Assembly: GCF_041956535.1 (NCBI RefSeq)
Contig: NW_027192215.1
Coordinates: forward strand, 62,001 to 126,000
From: Calcarisporiella thermophila CBS 279.70
Taxonomy: Eukaryota > Fungi > Calcarisporiellomycota
Length of the DNA stretch: 64,000 nt
Direction: 5' to 3'
Made by a program: the position numbers and the translations under genes. How positions within the stretch are numbered: the first letter of the stretch is position 1; every line of letters begins with the position of its first letter. Below are positions 20,150 through 30,090 of this stretch, one piece after another. Under the pieces are notes generated by a model. It worked only from the letters and a program-made list of their open reading frames with translations. It did no database searches and was not told the DNA's origin.

Positions 20150-22434
20150 AAAAAACTGCATTTTATGGTCACAACACTGAATTGAGAGGAGGCCTTTGAA
20201 CCAATTTATTTTTCCTGTTCTGGCTTTCGTCTCTTCATAACAACCTACACTATATACTATATATTATATATGTTTGTGAGTGTGTGAGTGAATGTGTGCG
20301 TGTTTTTTTTTCTCCATGATGTTTCATTTTTTTCATTCTAATATGTGAATAAATACCAAACTTAATGCTTTGTTTTTAGTACATTCCTAATAGATGGGGT
20401 GAAGCAGTCTCTTTTTGCCACCCATACCTATTCGGAGGCAAAGCTATTCGGAGCAAGGTGTGATCTACATACAGTAAGTGAAAAGCCAAGAATTGATTTG
20501 GAGACTTGATTTGAACGGAGATGCAGTGAATCGGTGAGAATTAGAAATGGTAGGAGAAAAGAAAGGATTTTTACGGAGTATTACTCGCAAAGAAATATTT
20601 CCTCTTAAAAGAAACTGATGCTCCAACGGGTATATCTTGGGCATCCAAACTATCAGTTATACATTATGTTTTGATTATTAATCTACTCTCAATCTTACGG
20701 TACTTTTGCATAAAATGAAAATTTTGGGAAGGGCTTTTTCCTATAAAACCTAATACCGTCTCTTGCCGTCCATAGTTTCATCTCACCCTGTTAACCCCAG
20801 AATTGACTACAAACAAATCTCTGTTTTATTATACAATTTGCCGTATAGTGCTAGTACATAATTTTTATTAATTAGGTAAGGGCATCTCTCTAGAAAATGC
20901 CTTAGTAAAATTATCTTACGCCCCAATCTAGTACTATTCCCCAAGTGCTTGCCTATCAAACATCTTTTGAGGACGAGTTTTGGATTGATGGAAGAAAGTG
21001 GATATTTCTAAACGCAGCTTCCTTTTTACAAACTTCTAGTTTTCTAGCATCGCCTAAGTGTTTTATCTGTTGGACACTCGGTCATTCACGACAAAGAATC
21101 CGTGGTTCCCTTCTCTATCTAGTGCCCTCATTTTCCCCAAAATTTCGAGAGCCTAGATGAAGGAACTATTATAATGCGCCGGAAATGATCCCAAAGTTTA
21201 CTGATGAATTGAATTGCCTTGTTGAGGTCCATGCGTGATATGATTTTAATATTCTGCACGCGATTATCAAGCTTGCAGACTTCCTCTTGAAGTGTAATCA
21301 GGGACAATTAGAGAGCGTGAAAATATATTCCATTAGCATCCGATAATTAAAGGGTTATCAAACTAGCAGGAAATGGCAATTGATAACTAATTAAATGGGG
21401 CAAGCAACATATATACGAAATCATACATTCTATTAATATCCAATATATGGAAGGTAGAGTGAAAACTGGTTAAGTATCTTGTAATTGTTGTAAGAGTCAG
21501 TGACCACGACTGGAGTCCTAAGTCCAAAATCAGAACATGGGGCTGTATTTTGGCATTGGATATGTTACTCATCCTAGCGTATGCCATGGACTAGTGTCTA
21601 TGCAACAGGCAGCTAGCTGCCTATGCTTCACGGTGATGAGATTGTTTTCTTGCACACAACACAAGCTATTTCCGGAGAAATTGCTTAGAAAATCAAATAA
21701 GTCAATGAAATTAAAAAAAAATTAATGATAGATTTAGGTCTCGTTTCTAATTAAAAATCCTTGGCTCTCCTAAGAAGATAAAATGGGAAAAATAGGTGAT
21801 TAAACAAGAAAGTACAAGGCAAATTAAACAATCAATCAATAAATGAAGAGTGAGATTATGAAGCATGGACTCCCGACGAACTCCACGTTCTGCATCCCTC
21901 GTATAAAAATCTTCCATAGTAGCCGTTTTAATTAAGCATATAATAAGACCTGGAATCGCATAAATTATTTAGGTAATATTGAATGTATATATGCAAGTCG
22001 AGTTTCCACTCTATTAGTCCACATGTGTCCTCTGAATTCGCGGTATTATAGAGTGTAGAAAACGGTACGGTGCGACTTGCTCAAAATCTGGACTAAGGAA
22101 TTTATTGCAAACACTACGTTAAGTTATAACAAATGAATTCAAATTTCCCTAATTTTTTTTTTCACAATGTGAATTTGAATATGAAGTTCTGTCTGCTGGA
22201 CAGAGAGGAGAGGGTACCTAACAAATAATAATTTTGCATTTTGTAAAACAAATGGCGATTCACTTTTTACCCGGGTATATCTATTATTACTACTACTAAG
22301 TCAGTACATTACTTCAAAATGGTTAATTTTTTTAAATAAGTAATCGTCAAATATAAAGCCAATTAAACTTATATAAGCATAATGCAGATTTTTGATTCCC
22401 AATATGATAATTTCACTTAGTGGTAATTAATAGA

Positions 22435-22592
22435 TATACCCAGCTTGCAAACGAAATTACTCAACCAATTTGATTAATTCTAGAAACAGGTTTAATTATG
22501 CATATATTGTATGCTTCTAACACCTCATCACATATAAAAAGAACACAATAAGTATACAATTTAGTGAACTTGCGAATGTAATAACCTAGAAG
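22435..22592 (+). promoter_or_regulatory. Promoter/5'UTR copy 1 (TATAAAAA 22533-22540), homologous to the hydrophobin promoter
   Basis: 22526-22577 matches 27007-27058 at 44/52 nt without gaps. Confidence 0.8.
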
Positions 22593-22895
22593 ATGTTTGC
22601 TACTATTATCTTTAGATTCGTATGCATTTTTGTCTTCCTACATTTTTGTACAGCACAATACAAGGGAAAAGTAATAGCTAAATCCGATCTCCCCGTTCGC
22701 ACTGGCCCTTCAACTAGTCATAAAGTCGTGGGGTCACTTCCTTCTGGTGCTGTAATAAGTATTGTGTGTAAAGTAAATGGACAAAATATTGGCGGCAACC
22801 CCAGATGGTACAAACTAAAAGATGGTCGGTATGTCGAAGGGTTTGTCGCATCACGCTATGTTGCAAATATAGGCGCTGCGCCGGAATGGTGTTAG
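22593..22895 (+). CDS. Small secreted bacterial-type SH3 (SH3b/SH3_3) domain protein, actinobacterial style, intronless
   Basis: Signal peptide ending CTA|Q, then L.VRTGPST...VVGSL..G..I.IVCK..G..IGGNPRWYKL.DG...GFVASRYV.NIG.APEWC. Confidence 0.85.
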   Translation: MFATIIFRFVCIFVFLHFCTAQYKGKVIAKSDLPVRTGPSTSHKVVGSLPSGAVISIVCKVNGQNIGGNPRWYKLKDGRYVEGFVASRYVANIGAAPEWC

Positions 22896-23650
22896 AAAAG
22901 GCCTAGTCAACCTAAAAACAAATTTCCTTATGAGTTGATATTTTGTTCACCTATACAACTAATTTAGTTTGATAACATTTAATCAGCAAATAATAAACAT
23001 TTTGCATTCTTTAATAAAATTCACCAAAAGGAGACGGCTCCATTTATTTTTTATTATATAATCAGCAAACAATATAAGTTGAAAACGAAACTATATAAAC
23101 GTAAGAGATGAATACATAATTTGAAATCGTGCAAAAATATAATCAACGAAGAATAAAAGATTAGAGCCAAAGGCTCCAGTTGTTCGACAACCGCAGAATT
23201 GAACTTATGGGCAGAGCATCAGCAAAGCGACGAAGCGCCAAACTCATGACCCAAATTCGTGAAAAAGAGGGTCGTTAGCTTGGGCAAGGGGAAGGGATAC
23301 TTTCTACACACAGTATGAAATCAGTCTTAGTATATATCTTTTTAATTAAATCCTAAGAGAGAAAAGCTGCCTCCGAATTGAACAATATTATGAACAAATT
23401 GAACTGTTTCAATCCTACTCGTCATCGTCCCCGTCCTCTTCGAGTTGATTCGCAGGAAGTACTTGTGCAGGTGTACATGAACCATCAGCTCGTGCAGCGG
23501 TTACAGATAATAAATTTGCATTACGTAAAACAAATGGTAAATCACTATTTACCTAGATATTGCTTTTATTACCGTTAAGTCAGTTAATTACTTCTAAGTT
23601 GGTTAATTATTTGTTTTAACTAAGGAATCACCAGATTAAATCTTCCCACA

Positions 23651-23682
23651 CTAAACTACACTAAACTACGATAAACTACGAT
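23651..23682. repeat. Short 10-bp tandem repeat, 3 copies (CTAAACTACA/CTAAACTACG/ATAAACTACG)
   Basis: Seen directly in the sequence. Confidence 0.7.
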
Positions 23683-23814
23683 GGGCAAGTATATCAATAT
23701 ACTATTGCCTTGCTCACAGCTTTCGAAGATACACAATATTCGAAGACAAAATGAGAAAATTGGGAGCAATAAAAGGAATGAATAACGCTCCCAAATTATT
23801 CAAGTTATTCAAAG

Positions 23815-24969
23815 CTAGATATTCAAATTATTCCGTTTCCCATAGCCAATGTTCCTCAGATAATCCTCCAGCAGCACCCACTCGATCCCTAGCTCCTTGT
23901 TTGATTCATACAGCTGTCGTTGCTGGGAATACATCCAGTTGAATAATTCAAATGTAACTGGGTTCACCCCGCTCTCTGGAGGAATACTTTGAGGTGGAAT
24001 AAATCGGTATTCGTGCTTGATTCCTGAAACTACAGCAATGAAAGAAAAGTCCGTCAGCTCAATCAGTGTAATTGAGTGAATACATTTGCAAGTAGAAGCA
24101 GTCAGGGAGATGCATACCTTTTGTTGCTATTTCTGCATACTCATTGAATGTGTAACACTTGCCAATTAGCGGTATAGTTTTTCCTAAATATTTATCTTTG
24201 TTTGAGAGTATTTTAACGACAGCTTTCTATTAAAGCAATAGTATCAGTCATCTTCATACACCATATGACGGGCCTGAGAATATGTCCACCATACTACCTA
24301 CCCCAAGATCAACACTAACAGCCAACATTGGAAGTTTGACATCGGGCTCGACGAAGTAAGATATATAAACCGTATCTCCCTCTTTTTTCATAACTGGAAA
24401 TGCAGTATCCCCGGCGATATTCTCATAATAAAATCCCAAATCCACAAACGTGGCTGGGAGTTCTATCTCTTTTACATACTCTTCTACTTGGTGCTTGTTA
24501 TCAAACTGGTCGTCTTTAAATCTCCCCTCAGACACTTGTTCTGAATTCACCAAGGTACTCCAAATGAAATGCTGCACCCCATTATTAAGGGCGGCGCTTG
24601 CCATGTTTTTGCCCTGTCGTATTTCCTCGCCTGCTTTCTGATTAATAGGGTCAAAAGTATTGGTAACTGCATAGACCGCGTAGGCTCCAGCGAAGCACCG
24701 TTTCATATCGTCAAGGCTTGAAGCATCTCCTTTAACAACTTCAGCGCCCAGTGAAGCAAGCAACTTGGCTTGTTCCGAATTAGTATTTCGCGTGATTGCA
24801 CGTACACTATACTCTCCCGATTGCAGGAGAGCTCTTGCAACAGATCCGCCTAACGACAAAAAGACGCGAAAAAGACTTAACAAAGGCTTGGAATAAAATT
24901 CCTTTTATATATTAATGATTTACCTTGCGATCCAGTTGCCCCAATTACTGCAACAATAGGCTTTGCCAT
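23815..24969 (-). CDS. NmrA-like (NMRAL1/HSCARG) atypical SDR protein (4 exons)
   Basis: MAKPIVAVIGATGSQG|GSVARALL...VRAITRN...GAEVVKGD...EIRQGKNMA.AA...GVQHFIWSTL...FDNKHQVEEY...GFYYEN. Confidence 0.9.
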
Positions 24970-24995
24970 CGGTTTAGATATTTTCTGTCTGGATA

Positions 24996-25351
24996 GAGTT
25001 ATTGAATAAAAAGTCTTTATCGAGCAATTTATACACTTATTAAACCGAATGCATCGTGTTTAGAAAGGAAATAGCAGGATTAGTTGATCATTACTAATAT
25101 TACATCAGATAAAAATCTCCATATTCGGCGATGCATATAATACTCTCAATATATGAAACGCTGCCAATTTTATGGAGTTACAGAATAAAAGGCCTTTATC
25201 GAGCAATTTATACACTCAGTAAACGAATGCATTATGTTTAGAATGGAAATAGCAGGATTAGTTGATCATTACTAATATTACATCAGATAAATAATCTCCA
25301 TATTCGGTGATACGTATTACTCTCAATATATGAAACACTGCCAATTTTATG
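24996..25351. repeat. Tandem direct duplication (~179 bp x2) of the NmrA proximal promoter
   Basis: Copies at 24996-25174 and 25175-25351 share long identical blocks such as GGAAATAGCAGGATTAGTTGATCATTACTAATATTACATCAGATAAA. Confidence 0.95.
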
Positions 25352-26927
25352 CTTGAATTTCCGGATCATACCTTCTATCCTAGTTAGAAAACAGGGAGTG
25401 ACTTGGAATCGATTTGTCATTGTTTAGAAATTTTTATTAATATTCACTAGTGTACTAGTTAATTCTCGCGTTAAAGTGTTAAAGTATTCCAATAGAAATG
25501 AGTAGTTAGAGGTGCTAAAACTTACATAACTATTTCATATAGCAATATACAGATATTAATAATAAGTATTCCTTAAGCTAATTGAGTTAATTTTTGGGTT
25601 TTTAATGGCTATGCTCTTTAATCCTACAAAAAAAAAATTCAAAAGAAAATCCCAAAGAGGCACGAGAAGGACAATGAATTGCTCAATCTTTTCAATTTTT
25701 TTTTTTTTATTTACAAACGAAAACTTAGAGAGTTTAGAGAGTGGCCAGTAATTTCTTTTGCTCCCGCTTATTCCTTTGTGATTTTTGCTTAGAGTGTTTT
25801 TTTTTTATATAAATAGCCCATAATATATTTCTTAGAATATCTCAATACAACACTTTCATTTAAATATGTATAAAAAATACTATGTAAAAATGAACATATA
25901 AAAATCACGCAAAAGCTTCTTCATAGTTAATATTTTTCAAATATTTTTCTAACTCAACCCATTCTATCCCATGCTCCTTTCTCGATTCAATGAGGTCGGA
26001 AAGTTATTCTCCATAATAAATACACAGGATGAAATTAGCACTAGTATATTCCTATTAATTCTCGGATTGCTATGTTTCGCAGAAATTGACATCAATATAA
26101 AAATGAGGAGCTCGTGTGTTGCAACTCAATTAGTTCAGCAGCTGATCGAAGTGTACATTCTCTAGCGAGATTGCTTGGTATTTTCGCAAGAATTGCTATC
26201 GGCCAAGTTGGTATGGCCTGAACTGAGTAATAGACTACGGACTTTGTCAGCAACCCACGCTTCACGATGATGAGGCCGGTTTATTGCATAAAATGAGCTG
26301 GTTAAATTCAAAACTCATACATTTTCAGTGGAATAAAGGGCTGCGTATGCTTGCTGCTGCCTCTGCGTAAAGTCCTGTTTCCTCCAACTCTTCTGGTCTT
26401 CTTATGGTACTCGACATTTCGGTCAATAAGCATTATAGTCAATAAAACAATACAATTCAGTGTATAATGTAAATTTGTTAATAGATGGCATTATTTCCAA
26501 CTAATTGGACACAATTATTTCAAGGGGGTGTGTAGATAATAAACTTATCACTTGGATCACACCAAATCAAGCCTCCAGGCTAATTCGTATTATGAAAGAA
26601 AATTCAGTGGATCGGGGTCCGTAAGAAAGAAGGTGGTGAGAAAAGGCTTTCGTCTCAATGCTTGCAGAGTTATTAGATCGGAATTGGAAAAACGAGGCAT
26701 TTTTAAAGGAGAAATGGGCAGTAATAAATTATAGTGCATACAAGCAACCGAAATTTATAAAATTTTATGTTGGTGCGTTAGCCATCTGGTTTTTATGTAG
26801 CTTGTGATTAGATAGTGCTGAATAATTAGCCAGTACTTACCCAAATTGGCGGCAATAATAGCTTTACCAGGGTACAAATAACGCCACCCGTAAAAAACTC
26901 GCCTATACAGGTTTGTTTTGCATACTA

Positions 26928-27064
26928 AATACCACCGCTTCAACGGATAGAAATTTGGATAGATCTACAATTTTTACCTACGTGTTTATTGCGGGCTTTT
27001 AATTCACATCACCTATAAAAAGAGCACAAAGAGAGTACAATTGAGTGAACTCGCGAATTCAAGG
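26928..27064 (+). promoter_or_regulatory. Promoter/5'UTR copy 2 (TATAAAAA 27014-27021), homologous to the SH3b gene promoter
   Basis: Same 44/52 match as copy 1. Confidence 0.8.
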
Positions 27065-27367
27065 ATGAAGTCAGTCTTCGTATTTTCCTTTTTAACTTTC
27101 GGGTCGTTATGCTTTGCCCAGTGTAATACTGGGTCACTTCATTGTTGCAATTCGGTTGTGAGCGCATCTTCTGATGAGGCTCAAAATTTAATCGGAATAC
27201 TTGGAATATCAACAAGTGATGTTACGGGCCCAGTAGGCCTTCAATGCAATCCCATCAGTAATATTGGTGGCAGCAACCGTTGTAATGCTCAGCCTGTTTG
27301 TTGCACGGGCAACAATTCCAATGGTTTAGTTGTTCTTGACTGTTCTCCCGTTAACGTTAATGTCTAA
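27065..27367 (+). CDS. Class I hydrophobin, basidiomycete SC3-like type, intronless
   Basis: Signal peptide ending CFA|Q. Eight Cys spaced C-X6-CC-X32-C-X11-C-X5-CC-X12-C; QCNTGSLHCCNS, VGLQCNPI, CNAQPVCC, GLVVLDCSPVN. Confidence 0.93.
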   Translation: MKSVFVFSFLTFGSLCFAQCNTGSLHCCNSVVSASSDEAQNLIGILGISTSDVTGPVGLQCNPISNIGGSNRCNAQPVCCTGNNSNGLVVLDCSPVNVNV

Positions 27368-30090
27368 ACCAAATGTTTACCGGGAGATGACATTAACTCG
27401 CTCGACTGAACTCAAAGTGCCATTTGATGGATTTGATTTGTGTGCATTTTAGTCCATCATGTAAAAAAAAATTAAATAAATTTAACTGCCGAGAATATGG
27501 ATCCTTATATTATATGGCGAAGAATTATCATGCAAATGGGACCCAGCTAAAGTTATGGCAATGTGAGGCTCACACTTGTCCAACCTAAATGCTACGTTAT
27601 CGGCCGCAAATATTGAATCGGAGAGAACATATTCATTTAGCTTATTCTGTATCAATATCTATAGCAATATATTGAATAAATTAAGGAATACACTGGAGAT
27701 GGCTTTAGGCTTCTGCCTCCGCTTCGAAATGCATTCACTACCCTCCTCTATGATGCCCACTCTGCTCTAGATCACATCTGTTTTTGGACGTGCTAGCAAT
27801 TTTCTCATCGTGATGCGTTGCGATTTACTTACTCCATAGGCGATGTACTACTGTATATGCTATTTTTCATCACTTTACAATAGGATGCAATGGGAAGGTT
27901 TTTTGACCGTTTTTAATATAAAATACCGTGTATCTATGCCTCCAATGTAATTTCATCAATTTTAAAAATAGTGTAGGTACTGTAGAAGGGATCCTCCATA
28001 TTCTTCTCTTAGATTGATGTTAAACGAGCAAAACATCATGTTTTTCCTTTTTTCAATACTGACATTACATGTCAAAGCACAAAAATATATGTTTTCCGTC
28101 CTCTGCCCTCCAGAAAACTCTTACTATATACCATTTGAAAAGCAGGTGTATTGCATGAGCTCTTCGAAGTGTTTCGGAGATAATTATCTGAGTCTTATAT
28201 ATATCAGACTTCCCCTCTCTTTCACAAACACTGCCATTGCACTCTCCACCTCTTCAAATGGACTGGAGGTGGGAGCTTTTTGGAGTTAGAGTGAATAATA
28301 CCTAGTTAATAACCAAGTGGCTCAAAATAAATAACAGCTGCGTTTAAAGATAGTATAAATCAATATAATTCGCCTCCTTATTTTCTGGCGATAGCCGCTA
28401 AACCATTTTCGCTGTCTCTGCCCATCCACAAATACCCAGTTATTGCTTCTGTTCATCGGAGGATCTTCCGAATTGTTGTGCAAACGGGCCGGTAGGACGC
28501 ACGTCCACTGCTCCCCCTAACCTCCGAGTCCTCTTTAATTACGTTCCAAACGGTCCACATGGCTTAGCCGGAGTGACAGCCCCTGAACATTACAAATGCA
28601 TATTGGTCCAAGTAGTACCAAAACTTTGGGTTCACCGAGGACGGTGTTGAATAGATTTGTGCGGAGACGGATCTGCTTATCTCCTCCTCTCGAAGTCGTC
28701 TGCAAACTCGGTTGACTTTTGAGCTGGACGGTCGGCTGAGCGTGTGCCGCAATCCCGGAGAGATAAAGCCCATTGCATTGAGTGATGTCAATGGCCATAG
28801 TTGAGCAGGCCAATCTCTCCAAAGACTCGCTCTCACCAGGACGGAGTTCCTTGATAAGGACATTCCCCGCTGGTTGCTTGCCTCGGCCCAATCATAACTA
28901 GAAACTCAGAGGGTAGCTTTGACTTTTAATACAATAGAGTTACGCGAAGACAGCATCCCACGTTCAACCGAAAGGATACGGTGAGTAGTTGCATCAGCTG
29001 CTCAATGAATTCGTTTAGTTCGGGCGTCATGTCTCTCTTTCGGCTGCCAAAGGACGATAAGAGCTGGTGCGTATGGGTCGTGAAAGAGGGTTTTTTTCTT
29101 TCATCCTTTCGGCTTAAAAATGAGCCGCGTGAGCAAATCGTCTCCGAGCTGCGGCTTGGAAGAAAAGCTTAAATTCTAAATCAAACGCCCATTATACCAG
29201 GAGAGGAAAGGGGGCATCATCGACCAGCTCTTCCCTGGCCTCAAAGCGGCTGGAGAGCCAAACCCGCCGCGGGCTCGGATGGGAGCCAAACAAAGAGGCG
29301 AGTGCAGCGCAGCCGAAAGGTTAGGTTCCCGATGAAGGTTAGCTTCGGCGGCCCAACGCTCTGCTACACTGTGCCTCCCGTTGTATCGCCTGCTTTGGTA
29401 ATGCAAAGAAATGTGGCTCATCCAGTACCACTAGCGTTTCTCCGGGTGCTGATCTTACCGCTTTTGTCTCGATCCCATGCGGAGGGATCAGAGGCTGGGA
29501 GAAAGCAAACACGGCCGGAGAAGGGAAAGGCCGCCAGGCATTTTTCACGGCCGGCCTCATTGCCACTCAAGCACCCTCCTCCCGGGGCTGGCCAGCACGC
29601 CACGAGAAAGGGGGATCCGGGGGCGCCGGGGAGTGATGGAAGACGGGAACTAAACCCTGCTCGTGAACTCAAGGTGGGCGCACGGTGTGCCCGAGCAGCG
29701 GCAGAATTAGGAAGCAACCGCCTCAGGCCTGGGCCGGTCAGTTGACTGCAGCTCAAAGAAACGGCCCTCAAAGAGAAATCCGGTAAGCACGAAAAAAAAA
29801 GAAGCGGTGCCACAGTGTGTGACACGTGCGCTCGCCCTAAAATAGAGTTATTTCTATGTGAACCGAACCATTGGAGTTCCCCGAGGCTCCGGCTCATCCT
29901 CACGACGCTTTAAATACTCGTGCTTATTTTCCTGTCCTCTCCGCCTTCCTCTTGACGCGCGCAGCCTCCTCTCCTCTCCTCTCTCCATTGCCGCAATTGG
30001 CTCCTTCTCCTCCTCGACACCTCTCTCCGTTCTGAATCCTCCCCAATCCTACCCCACCCTCCTCTCCACCACTTCTCTTTCTCCTTAGTC

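Follow-up and report, generated by a model that had tools for sequence, protein, structure and literature searches.

Two neighbouring genes for unrelated, putatively secreted proteins, an SH3b protein and a class I hydrophobin, stand behind two copies of the same putative promoter, and we consider it likely that this arrangement goes back to one local duplication of a block holding the promoter and the start of a hydrophobin gene, the two copies now differing by a 0.73-kb indel that bears the SH3b gene. In this history, an ordinary TATA-box core promoter with the start of its 5'UTR, about 135 nt in all, would have been duplicated once locally, and the duplicated block would also have included the beginning of a hydrophobin gene. 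Gain or loss of the 0.73-kb piece in a single event would have placed one gene under the other gene's promoter, and the hydrophobin start behind the SH3b gene would have decayed to a relic of 13 codons. On this reading the locus is a one-off record of promoter hand-over, with no cassette family behind it.

Results

A putative promoter present twice in the genome

The window is a stretch of 64,000 nucleotides, in whose coordinates all positions are given (Table 1) unless another sequence is named. Its host, Calcarisporiella thermophila, is a thermophilic, early-diverging fungus outside the Dikarya.

Table 1. Features of the island, in the order of their position in the window
Feature	Position	Strand	Description
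psi0, decayed hydrophobin fragment	21545..21714	+	homologue of the 3' portion of psi2
R, direct repeat copy 1	22221..22357	+	about 137 nt; flanks the SH3b unit
P1, promoter/5'UTR copy 1	22445..22577	+	upstream of the SH3b gene; conserved core 22526-22577; putative promoter
Segment in copy 1 only	22578..23305	+	about 0.73 kb: 15-nt leader, whole SH3b gene, tail of about 410 nt
SH3b gene	22593..22895	+	signal peptide 22593-22658 (MFATIIFRFVCIFVFLHFCTAQ, predicted); mature SH3_3 domain 22659-22892
psi1, hydrophobin start relic	23306..23347	+	ATG at 23315, MKSVLVYIFLIKS, then stop; 13 codons
R', direct repeat copy 2	23503..23640	+	
NmrA-like gene, between P1 and P2	23810..25439	-	Pfam NmrA, E 2e-40
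psi2, hydrophobin pseudogene	26019..26337	+	start at 26029, then frameshift; first Cys lost; stop after ...GQVGM
P2, promoter/5'UTR copy 2	26918..27058	+	upstream of the hydrophobin gene; putative promoter
Class I hydrophobin gene	27065..27367	+	intact, without introns; Pfam PF01185, E 1.5e-22

The two 52-nt strings singled out by the initial annotation were found at 22526-22577 and 27007-27058, identical at 44 of 52 positions without gaps. The colinear similarity that it had described further upstream is also real: it reaches 22445 and 26918, from where 97 of 129 aligned positions of P1 and P2 are identical. Their local alignment scored 47 (200 shuffles gave at most 22.5; z = 16.9), and a separate run gave 43, where no score above 18 arose in 500 dinucleotide shuffles and none above 28 among 826 real window tiles. 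The differences had been called mostly transitions, which holds within the 24-nt piece then considered; over the whole block, transitions and transversions stand at 15:17, and at this ratio of about 1:1 we reject a transition bias of the RIP kind for the duplicates.

Each copy carries a TATA box, TATAAAAAG, at 22533-22541 in P1, with the SH3b ATG 60 nt further on, and at 27014-27022 in P2, with the hydrophobin ATG 51 nt further on; from this box and its position we infer that P1 and P2 are promoters. The core is 85% identical without gaps, versus 69% both in its flank and in the neutral psi0/psi2 pair (binomial p 0.008), a difference that fits function in both cores. Because the stretch from TATA box to UTR has been kept in both copies, the SH3b and hydrophobin genes are probably governed by common transcriptional inputs. 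The block was also compared with the sequence upstream of two Agaricales homologues of the hydrophobin, and no similarity was found.

The initial annotation had taken many such copies as what would establish a cassette family. In a pattern search allowing up to 3 mismatches, each half of the core occurred twice in the 28-Mb genome (control pattern, 0), and a whole-genome search with a sequence-only covariance profile of the 148-column block returned two matches, P1 (E 1.7e-31) and P2 (E 9e-36). The next-best match, on C6, was rejected as a third copy; it is a TATA region of generic type that no secreted ORF follows. The core pattern had 0 matches in JGI metagenome contigs. These genome-wide searches contradict the proposed family, and two copies amount to a one-off duplication, an outcome for which the initial annotation had itself allowed.

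Two intact genes of unrelated type

As had been described, both ORFs comprise 100 codons plus a stop on the forward strand, counted from the ATG, and their mature domains are unrelated in Pfam; the equal length of the ORFs is a coincidence. Exact-protein look-ups found neither ORF on record.

The SH3b protein matches SH3_3 (PF08239) over residues 32-90 (49.6 bits, cut-off 27; E 4.4e-13) and retains the invariant GNPRWYKL motif and two cysteines. Its closest relatives are Streptomyces proteins, 59-65% identical over the mature part only; the named top matches all belong to Streptomyces, Streptantibioticus or Phytoactinopolyspora, and the others lie on contigs of 67-70% GC. Homologue searches found no SH3b of this type in other fungi, although fungal SH3-like muramidase modules do exist, and relatives in metagenome contigs came from high-GC bacterial loci only. 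The first 16 residues are unmatched in the best 150 of 2008 homologues, apart from two weak multi-domain matches. This pattern of matches suggests a foreign-looking ancestry of actinobacterial type. GC3 is 0.33, in line with the composition of the island, versus 0.84-0.95 in the closest homologues; where the amino acid is conserved, 75-80% of third codon positions have changed, and the tail of about 410 nt behind the gene is 25% GC. The SH3b segment is fully ameliorated, at compositional equilibrium with the AT-rich island.

The hydrophobin matches its Pfam family with 80.5 bits against a cut-off of 23, and its eight cysteines (20, 27, 28, 61, 73, 79, 80 and 93) align with those of Agaricales hydrophobins in the class I arrangement C-CC-C-C-CC-C. 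Agaricales proteins are its closest relatives, at 52-64% identity; the genome's own C18 hydrophobins are just 28% identical to it. The Agaricales homologues have introns, measuring 491-499 bp for 106-109 aa. A third Pfam hydrophobin match, on C7, was spurious. The intronless gene was also examined as a candidate processed retrocopy: a run of nine A residues lies 95 nt past the hydrophobin stop, and no target-site duplication was seen.

Hydrophobin relics and the 0.73-kb indel

The island holds four hydrophobin-derived pieces, three of them decayed, together with intact SH3b and hydrophobin ORFs. That only these two ORFs have been kept amid a graveyard of hydrophobin duplicates argues that both are functional. 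Among the decayed pieces, psi0 resembles 26178-26337 at 69% identity (z = 8.0, a score reached in 0 of 300 shuffles; blastn E 0.005), and psi2 is matched by an Agaricales hydrophobin profile at 26078-26230 (hmmsearch iE 3.8e-7; tblastn E 4e-4), its start region resembling the intact gene and psi1 (z 5 to 11). In psi1, 23312-23345 is identical to 27062-27095 of the intact gene at 28 of 34 positions, spanning the ATG and 10 codons (z 6.7 to 13.5). All three starts are mutually similar (z 8 to 13). A 31-nt pattern of the hydrophobin start, with up to 3 mismatches, occurs in the 28 Mb only in psi1 and the intact gene (control, 0). We also looked for remnants of a hydrophobin body after psi1 and of SH3b downstream of the hydrophobin, and found none.

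The position of psi1 is informative: it lies on the same strand as P1 and downstream of it, behind the complete SH3b gene. The offset between the copies is 4481 at the end of the promoter block (22577 to 27058) and 3750 at the hydrophobin start (23312 to 27062), implying that the promoter and the hydrophobin start abut at the hydrophobin locus, with 3 nt between them (GCGAAT-TCA-AGG-ATG), and lie 734 nt apart at the SH3b locus. The segment that separates them has a right edge uncertain by a few nt (23305-23311) and is unique in the genome; its flanks gave no tblastx homology to Streptomyces or Logan donor contigs. Because psi0 and psi2 form a further colinear pair upstream of both copies (z 8), the duplicated block would have spanned at least 1.5 kb. 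The immediate upstream neighbours differ, R before P1 and another segment before P2, and such ragged block boundaries imply that the history includes further indels.

As to direction, we lean slightly towards SH3b as the older resident, the hydrophobin copy having gained its promoter by losing the SH3b piece; the contending alternative is a move of the SH3b gene, by then domesticated, into the 5'UTR of a partially duplicated hydrophobin gene. The duplicated blocks have diverged neutrally by only about 31%, which by our own estimate, from a simple two-rate GC/AT model, allows roughly one quarter of the compositional change that SH3b would need. Composition thus makes a fresh bacterial insertion after the duplication unlikely. 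Gene conversion between copies 4.5 kb apart could make the duplication seem younger than it is and so weaken this argument.

The surroundings are themselves rich in duplications. R and R' are 75-80% identical (E 3e-20), and a third copy lies at C31:168458-168556. The region upstream of the NmrA-like gene is tandemly duplicated (24993-25174 and 25172-25351, 90-92% identical), and the gene itself matches C31:168723-170065 with 75% identity over 1356 nt. The AT-rich island is partly paralogous to a segment of contig C31; neither SH3b nor hydrophobin is present there, and a search of that segment for promoter or hydrophobin remnants found none.

Signal peptides and alternative histories

The initial annotation had read the locus as a modular host cassette of promoter plus signal peptide, duplicated and then given a new mature domain by exchange at the signal-cleavage site, as a general route of domestication. 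The promoter block before both genes fits such a reading, and so does the C-x-A-Q that ends both signal peptides; both N-termini do read so, but in the hydrophobin this Q is the first residue of a QC that is invariant among Agaricales hydrophobins. The best local alignment of P1 and P2, however, stops at 22577 and 27058 (GCGAAT), 15 nt short of the SH3b ATG. What was duplicated upstream of these two unrelated, foreign-looking genes is thus promoter and 5'UTR, as proposed, and not the signal peptide, which leaves no room for an exchange at the cleavage site; the hydrophobin start has its real homologue in psi1, 734 nt downstream of P1. The signal peptides, of 22 and 19 residues, show no significant similarity (p about 0.10 at the protein level). 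When the DNA of the SH3b leader and signal peptide was compared with the hydrophobin starts, one of three comparisons gave p about 0.02 (0.017; shuffle p was otherwise 0.08 to 0.35), and 2-5% of real island tiles match those starts equally well. The SH3b signal-peptide region faintly resembles psi2 (uncorrected p about 0.02), which we put down to T-rich composition. Since 82% identity to the hydrophobin start persists even in neutral psi1, an equally old signal peptide should be recognisable. With only two copies genome-wide as well, we give the cassette hardly any credence; each protein is predicted to be secreted via its own, unrelated signal peptide.

Nor does the block look like what is left of a transposable element or MITE lying by chance in front of the two genes. 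The island does contain other short dispersed repeats, such as R with its three copies on two contigs, but the block is present exactly twice in 28 Mb, the next profile match having E 0.07; inspection of its ends revealed neither terminal inverted repeats nor target-site duplications, and it finishes in a TATA box and 5'UTR at normal spacing from both ATGs, so this origin is extremely improbable. It is very unlikely, too, that gene conversion maintained or created the similarity, or that the promoter of about 140 nt alone was copied and pasted, with no larger block and with psi1 as an unrelated neighbour. The patchwork of short duplications in the island and the different sequences directly preceding P1 and P2 would suit such an event; psi1, however, shares the strand, follows in the expected order and is the nearest relative of the intact hydrophobin start, and psi0 and psi2 are colinear upstream. 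A partial hydrophobin duplicate might instead have received bacterial DNA carrying SH3b straight into its 5'UTR, the promoter being captured at transfer. SH3b is actinobacterial in type and was not found in other fungi in our searches, and the insert sits exactly between promoter and relic start. We nevertheless judge direct integration unlikely: against a neutral divergence of about 31% the segment is fully ameliorated (GC3 0.33; 25% GC in its tail), its signal peptide is eukaryotic and T-rich in type and unrelated to bacterial N-termini, and no donor-flank homology was found.

Discussion

That genes which have been relocated or acquired horizontally may capture promoters is a general concept in eukaryotic horizontal gene transfer and new-gene evolution, and the acquisition of eukaryotic promoters by horizontally acquired genes is usually inferred, not seen. 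The present locus resembles such cases in that a gene of apparently bacterial ancestry would stand under a eukaryotic TATA-box promoter common to a resident-type gene, through a simple local rearrangement. It differs in that a relic of the partner's start codon survives, and the capture, which we read from sequence, may have run in either direction. Because this relic, the promoter copy and the complete SH3b gene are all preserved, the rearrangement can be placed with a precision of a few bases. The analysis removes the reading of a reusable promoter-plus-signal-peptide cassette. That the hand-over left a fossil uniting an actinobacterial peptidoglycan-binding SH3b and an Agaricomycete-type hydrophobin as a co-regulated pair, acting at the surface or in interaction with bacteria, is conceivable, though we hold it doubtful. 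Were it so, one 0.73-kb indel beside a duplicated promoter would suffice to make an acquired gene part of the host's expression programme.

The solved structures nearest to SH3b by sequence (PDB 8b2f, 8b2g, 8b2h and 8b2s; E 1.6e-7 to 4e-6) are SH3-like cell-wall-binding domains of fungal GH24/GH184 muramidases, and the SH3b-type modules of these enzymes are secreted, fungal and modelled as peptidoglycan-binding (PMC10394673). Unlike them, the SH3b described here stands alone, without a catalytic module, and it is far nearer to stand-alone or tandem SH3b proteins of Streptomyces (59-65%) than to the muramidase modules.

Cyst nematodes offer a parallel in the DOG box, an effector-associated promoter motif (PMC10946958, PMC4901422), in that unrelated secreted proteins, some acquired by horizontal transfer, have one upstream motif in common. 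DOG-type motifs, however, are short and precede many genes, whereas here a single 135-nt duplicate occurs twice.

The tandem hydrophobin clusters of Agaricomycetes are a further point of comparison. The protein is likewise of class I and 52-64% identical to its Agaricales relatives, and the island has four hydrophobin pieces; here, by contrast, the host is non-Dikarya, the gene is intronless and three of the four copies are dead. The Agaricales homologues are also clustered: in locus L033, hydrophobin neighbours flank the homologue.

A putative promoter block duplicated once

The initial annotation had proposed that a cassette of promoter and signal peptide, perhaps one of a family, serves two unrelated secreted proteins, an SH3b protein and a hydrophobin. 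The 52-nt core strings before the two genes are indeed present, with 44 of 52 positions identical. The colinear similarity described upstream of them is also real: the putative promoter/5'UTR blocks P1 (before SH3b) and P2 (before the hydrophobin gene) align with a local score of 47 (z = 16.9), where shuffles reach 22.5 at most, and another alignment run gave 43, above the maxima of 18 in dinucleotide shuffles and 28 among 826 real window tiles. Both ORFs have 100 codons and lie on the + strand, and their products match SH3_3 (PF08239, E 4.4e-13) and Hydrophobin (PF01185, E 1.5e-22).

We therefore accept the pair, but not the family. Searched through the whole genome with up to 3 mismatches, each half of the core occurs exactly twice, and a reversed control pattern not at all. 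A sequence-only profile of the promoter block, built from a 148-column alignment, recovered both copies (E 9e-36 and 1.7e-31) and nothing further in the genome better than E 0.07; that best extra match is a generic TATA region, and no secreted ORF follows it. The core pattern was likewise not found in the metagenome collection. Two copies genome-wide had been set beforehand as the mark of a one-off duplication, and that is how we read the pair.

Features of the AT-rich island, in + strand order
Feature	Position	Strand	Description
psi0	21545-21714	+	decayed hydrophobin piece
A-run past psi0	21710-21726		
R	22221-22357		direct repeat, 137 nt
P1	22445-22577	+	putative promoter block; core 22526-22577
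Intervening segment	22578-23305/23311	+	15-nt leader, complete SH3b ORF including a signal peptide of its own, ~410-nt tail
SH3b gene	22593-22895	+	
psi1	23306-23347	+	relic hydrophobin start
R'	23503-23640		direct copy of R
Short tandem repeat	23645-23683		imperfect; units cactaaacta / cgataaacta
NmrA-like gene	23810-25439	-	
Tandem duplication	24993-25174 / 25172-25351		~180 nt
psi2	26019-26337	+	decayed hydrophobin piece
P2	26918-27058	+	putative promoter block; core 27007-27058
Hydrophobin gene	27065-27367	+	intact, class I
A9 run	27459-27480		in AT-rich stretch, 95 nt past the hydrophobin stop

A native, AT-rich setting

The window corresponds to C25:62001-126000 of a 28.2 Mb assembly; the CBS 279.70 genome was published with a set of thermophilic fungi (PMC11393059). 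The window contains an SDHA ORF (582 aa) whose product matches a Calcarisporiella thermophila protein at 100% identity; the next best matches (86-88%) are scattered across Mucoromycota and Glomeromycotina. Both cargo genes sit in an island of about 8 kb with 35-38% GC, bordered by genes of 50-61% GC. Parts of 22250-26874 have a paralogous segment on another contig of the same genome (C31:167712-170065, loci L026-L028), at 62-76% identity. Both carry the NmrA-like gene and the region upstream of it (together 75% identical over 1356 nt), repeat R, and a piece of 245 nt (26648-26874 in the window). The C31 segment contains no promoter block, hydrophobin or SH3b. Because part of the island has this counterpart, we conclude from sequence that its backbone is native repeated DNA and not a contaminant.

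The direct copies of R, 1282 nt apart, flank the SH3b unit, and a third copy lies at C31:168458-168556; the repeat may be a transposon end or a recombination scar. A short imperfect tandem repeat follows directly past R'. Upstream of the NmrA-like gene there is also a tandem duplication (90-92% identity), the sole island duplicate with an excess of transitions (11:3).

Homology ends before the SH3b start codon

The signal peptide had been taken as part of the shared unit, with the mature domains exchanged at the cleavage site. Homology between the loci ends, however, at GCGAAT (22577/27058), which leaves 15 nt to the SH3b ATG and 6 nt to the hydrophobin ATG. Alignment of the SH3b leader and signal-peptide DNA to the three hydrophobin starts yields scores of 8.5 to 12.5, which 2%-5% of real 76-nt island tiles equal or exceed (shuffle p 0.08, 0.35 and 0.017). 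Compared as proteins, the two signal peptides, predicted by eye and composition, give p ~0.10. The counterpart of the hydrophobin start lies instead further downstream: its AGG-ATG and first ten codons recur at 23312-23345, in psi1, with 28 of 34 positions identical (z 6.7 to 13.5), and the relic start there reads MKSVLVYIFLIKS, then a stop. A degenerate 31-nt start pattern, allowing up to 3 mismatches, has just two matches genome-wide, at 27065 and 23315; a more decayed recurrence is seen at 26019-26073. Because homology stops before the SH3b ATG and the start counterpart lies downstream, the signal peptide falls outside the shared unit, and an exchange at the cleavage site is not borne out. 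The Q remarked on after the signal peptides is present in the hydrophobin, but as part of a QC invariant in Agaricales homologues; the YKG after the SH3b Q is the conserved beginning of the Streptomyces domain.

The gap from promoter block to start block is 3 nt at the hydrophobin locus versus 734 nt at the SH3b locus (offsets 4481 and 3750), and the intervening segment is unique in the genome. At the level of sequence, these alignments establish that a single block was duplicated and that its two copies are set apart by an indel of 0.73 kb, which carries SH3b and lies between promoter and hydrophobin start.

A decaying hydrophobin array

An HMM from an Agaricales hydrophobin alignment, run on six-frame translations, detected psi2 at 26078-26230 (iE 3.8e-7; tblastn E 4e-4). 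This pseudogene has a frameshift past its signal-peptide remnant, has lost the first Cys and carries a premature stop; its 3' part is homologous to psi0 (z 8). The island thus holds four hydrophobin-derived pieces (psi0, the relic start, psi2 and the intact gene), of which one is intact. Since psi0/psi2 and (P1+psi1)/(P2+hydrophobin) are colinear pairs, the arrangement indicates that a block of 1.5 kb or more was duplicated and that indels followed. Identity is 69% for psi0/psi2, 69% for the upstream flank of the promoter, 82% for psi1/hydrophobin and 85%, gap-free, for the TATA-to-UTR core. This core has kept more identity than the neutral psi0/psi2 pair (binomial p 0.008; Fisher p 0.03 to 0.06), which is modest evidence for constraint on both of its copies. 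The duplicates show about as many transitions as transversions, and a RIP-like signature was rejected on that ground. The A-runs past the hydrophobin gene and psi0 resemble each other; they may have been left by the poly(A) of retrocopies, or may simply belong to terminator regions.

Origins of the two cargos

Named matches to the hydrophobin are all from Agaricomycetes (52-64% identity), and its nearest Atlas clusters are from Basidiomycota. Agaricales hydrophobin genes have introns; the window gene has none. Outside Dikarya, hydrophobins are rare, yet reported (bioRxiv 10.1101/2022.08.19.504535). A tandem pair on another contig (C18:373349-375051; L009, L010) is only 28% identical to the window hydrophobin, which argues that the genome holds two unrelated hydrophobin lineages. 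GC3 is 0.32 in the window gene, a normal 0.57-0.59 in the C18 pair and 0.61-0.90 in neighboring native genes. Because it is also low in the NmrA-like gene (0.41) and its C31 paralogue (0.43), we take low GC3 as a sign that a gene lives in an AT-rich compartment, and not in itself as a sign of foreign origin.

For SH3b, a word-based search gave five matches, three from Streptomyces, with 59-65% identity across the mature 78% only. An exhaustive search found 2008 homologues at E <= 1e-3, and practically none among those listed covers residues 1-16. The named top representatives are all Actinomycetota; the remaining top homologues carry signal peptides of bacterial type and come from contigs with 67-70% GC. 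Where the amino acid is conserved, the third codon position has changed relative to the bacterial genes in 75-80% of codons, and GC3 is 0.33 versus 0.84-0.95. Amino-acid identity to the bacterial proteins is nevertheless 59-67%, as high as the 56% between two of those proteins. From this we infer long residence under purifying selection. Among solved structures, the SH3-like cell-wall-binding domains found in fungal muramidases come nearest (PMC10394673), which makes binding of peptidoglycan or the cell wall the likeliest function of SH3b. No self-match for either 100-aa product turned up in a set of 5.8 billion proteins or by exact look-up, although one did for SDHA from this genome; the two genes may therefore be lacking from public annotation.

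Direction of the proposed promoter hand-over

Two histories fit the structure. The SH3b segment may have arrived in the 5'UTR of a hydrophobin gene that was only partly duplicated; or the ancestral order was promoter, SH3b, tail and hydrophobin, and after duplication of the block the hydrophobin copy lost its SH3b segment and the other copy its hydrophobin. The few junction bases do not separate them: compared with psi2, a single substitution and a single indel separate the hydrophobin AATTCA-AGG from AATACACAGG. Composition, used as a clock, tells them apart to some degree, although gene conversion between copies could blur it. The blocks have diverged neutrally by ~31%, uncorrected, which in our own estimate, with a simple two-rate GC/AT model, moves GC3 from ~0.9 to only ~0.65. 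Because SH3b stands far below this, at 0.33 (its tail has 25% GC), it had probably long been a fungal gene, adapted to high AT, by the time the blocks diverged. This disfavors a fresh bacterial insertion, and favors either the ancestral composite order or entry of SH3b by relocation within the genome.

What stands of the proposed cassette is a putative promoter, duplicated, with an unrelated secreted cargo behind each copy; the shared signal peptide, the cleavage-site swap and the family do not. We read the locus as a lone instance in which a local indel, within a hydrophobin array in decay, passed a promoter from one gene to the other. The TATA boxes lie 60 nt (SH3b) and 51 nt (hydrophobin) before the ATGs. 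Both would drive transcription from within a conserved 24-nt block, and similar regulation of SH3b and hydrophobin would be the outcome.
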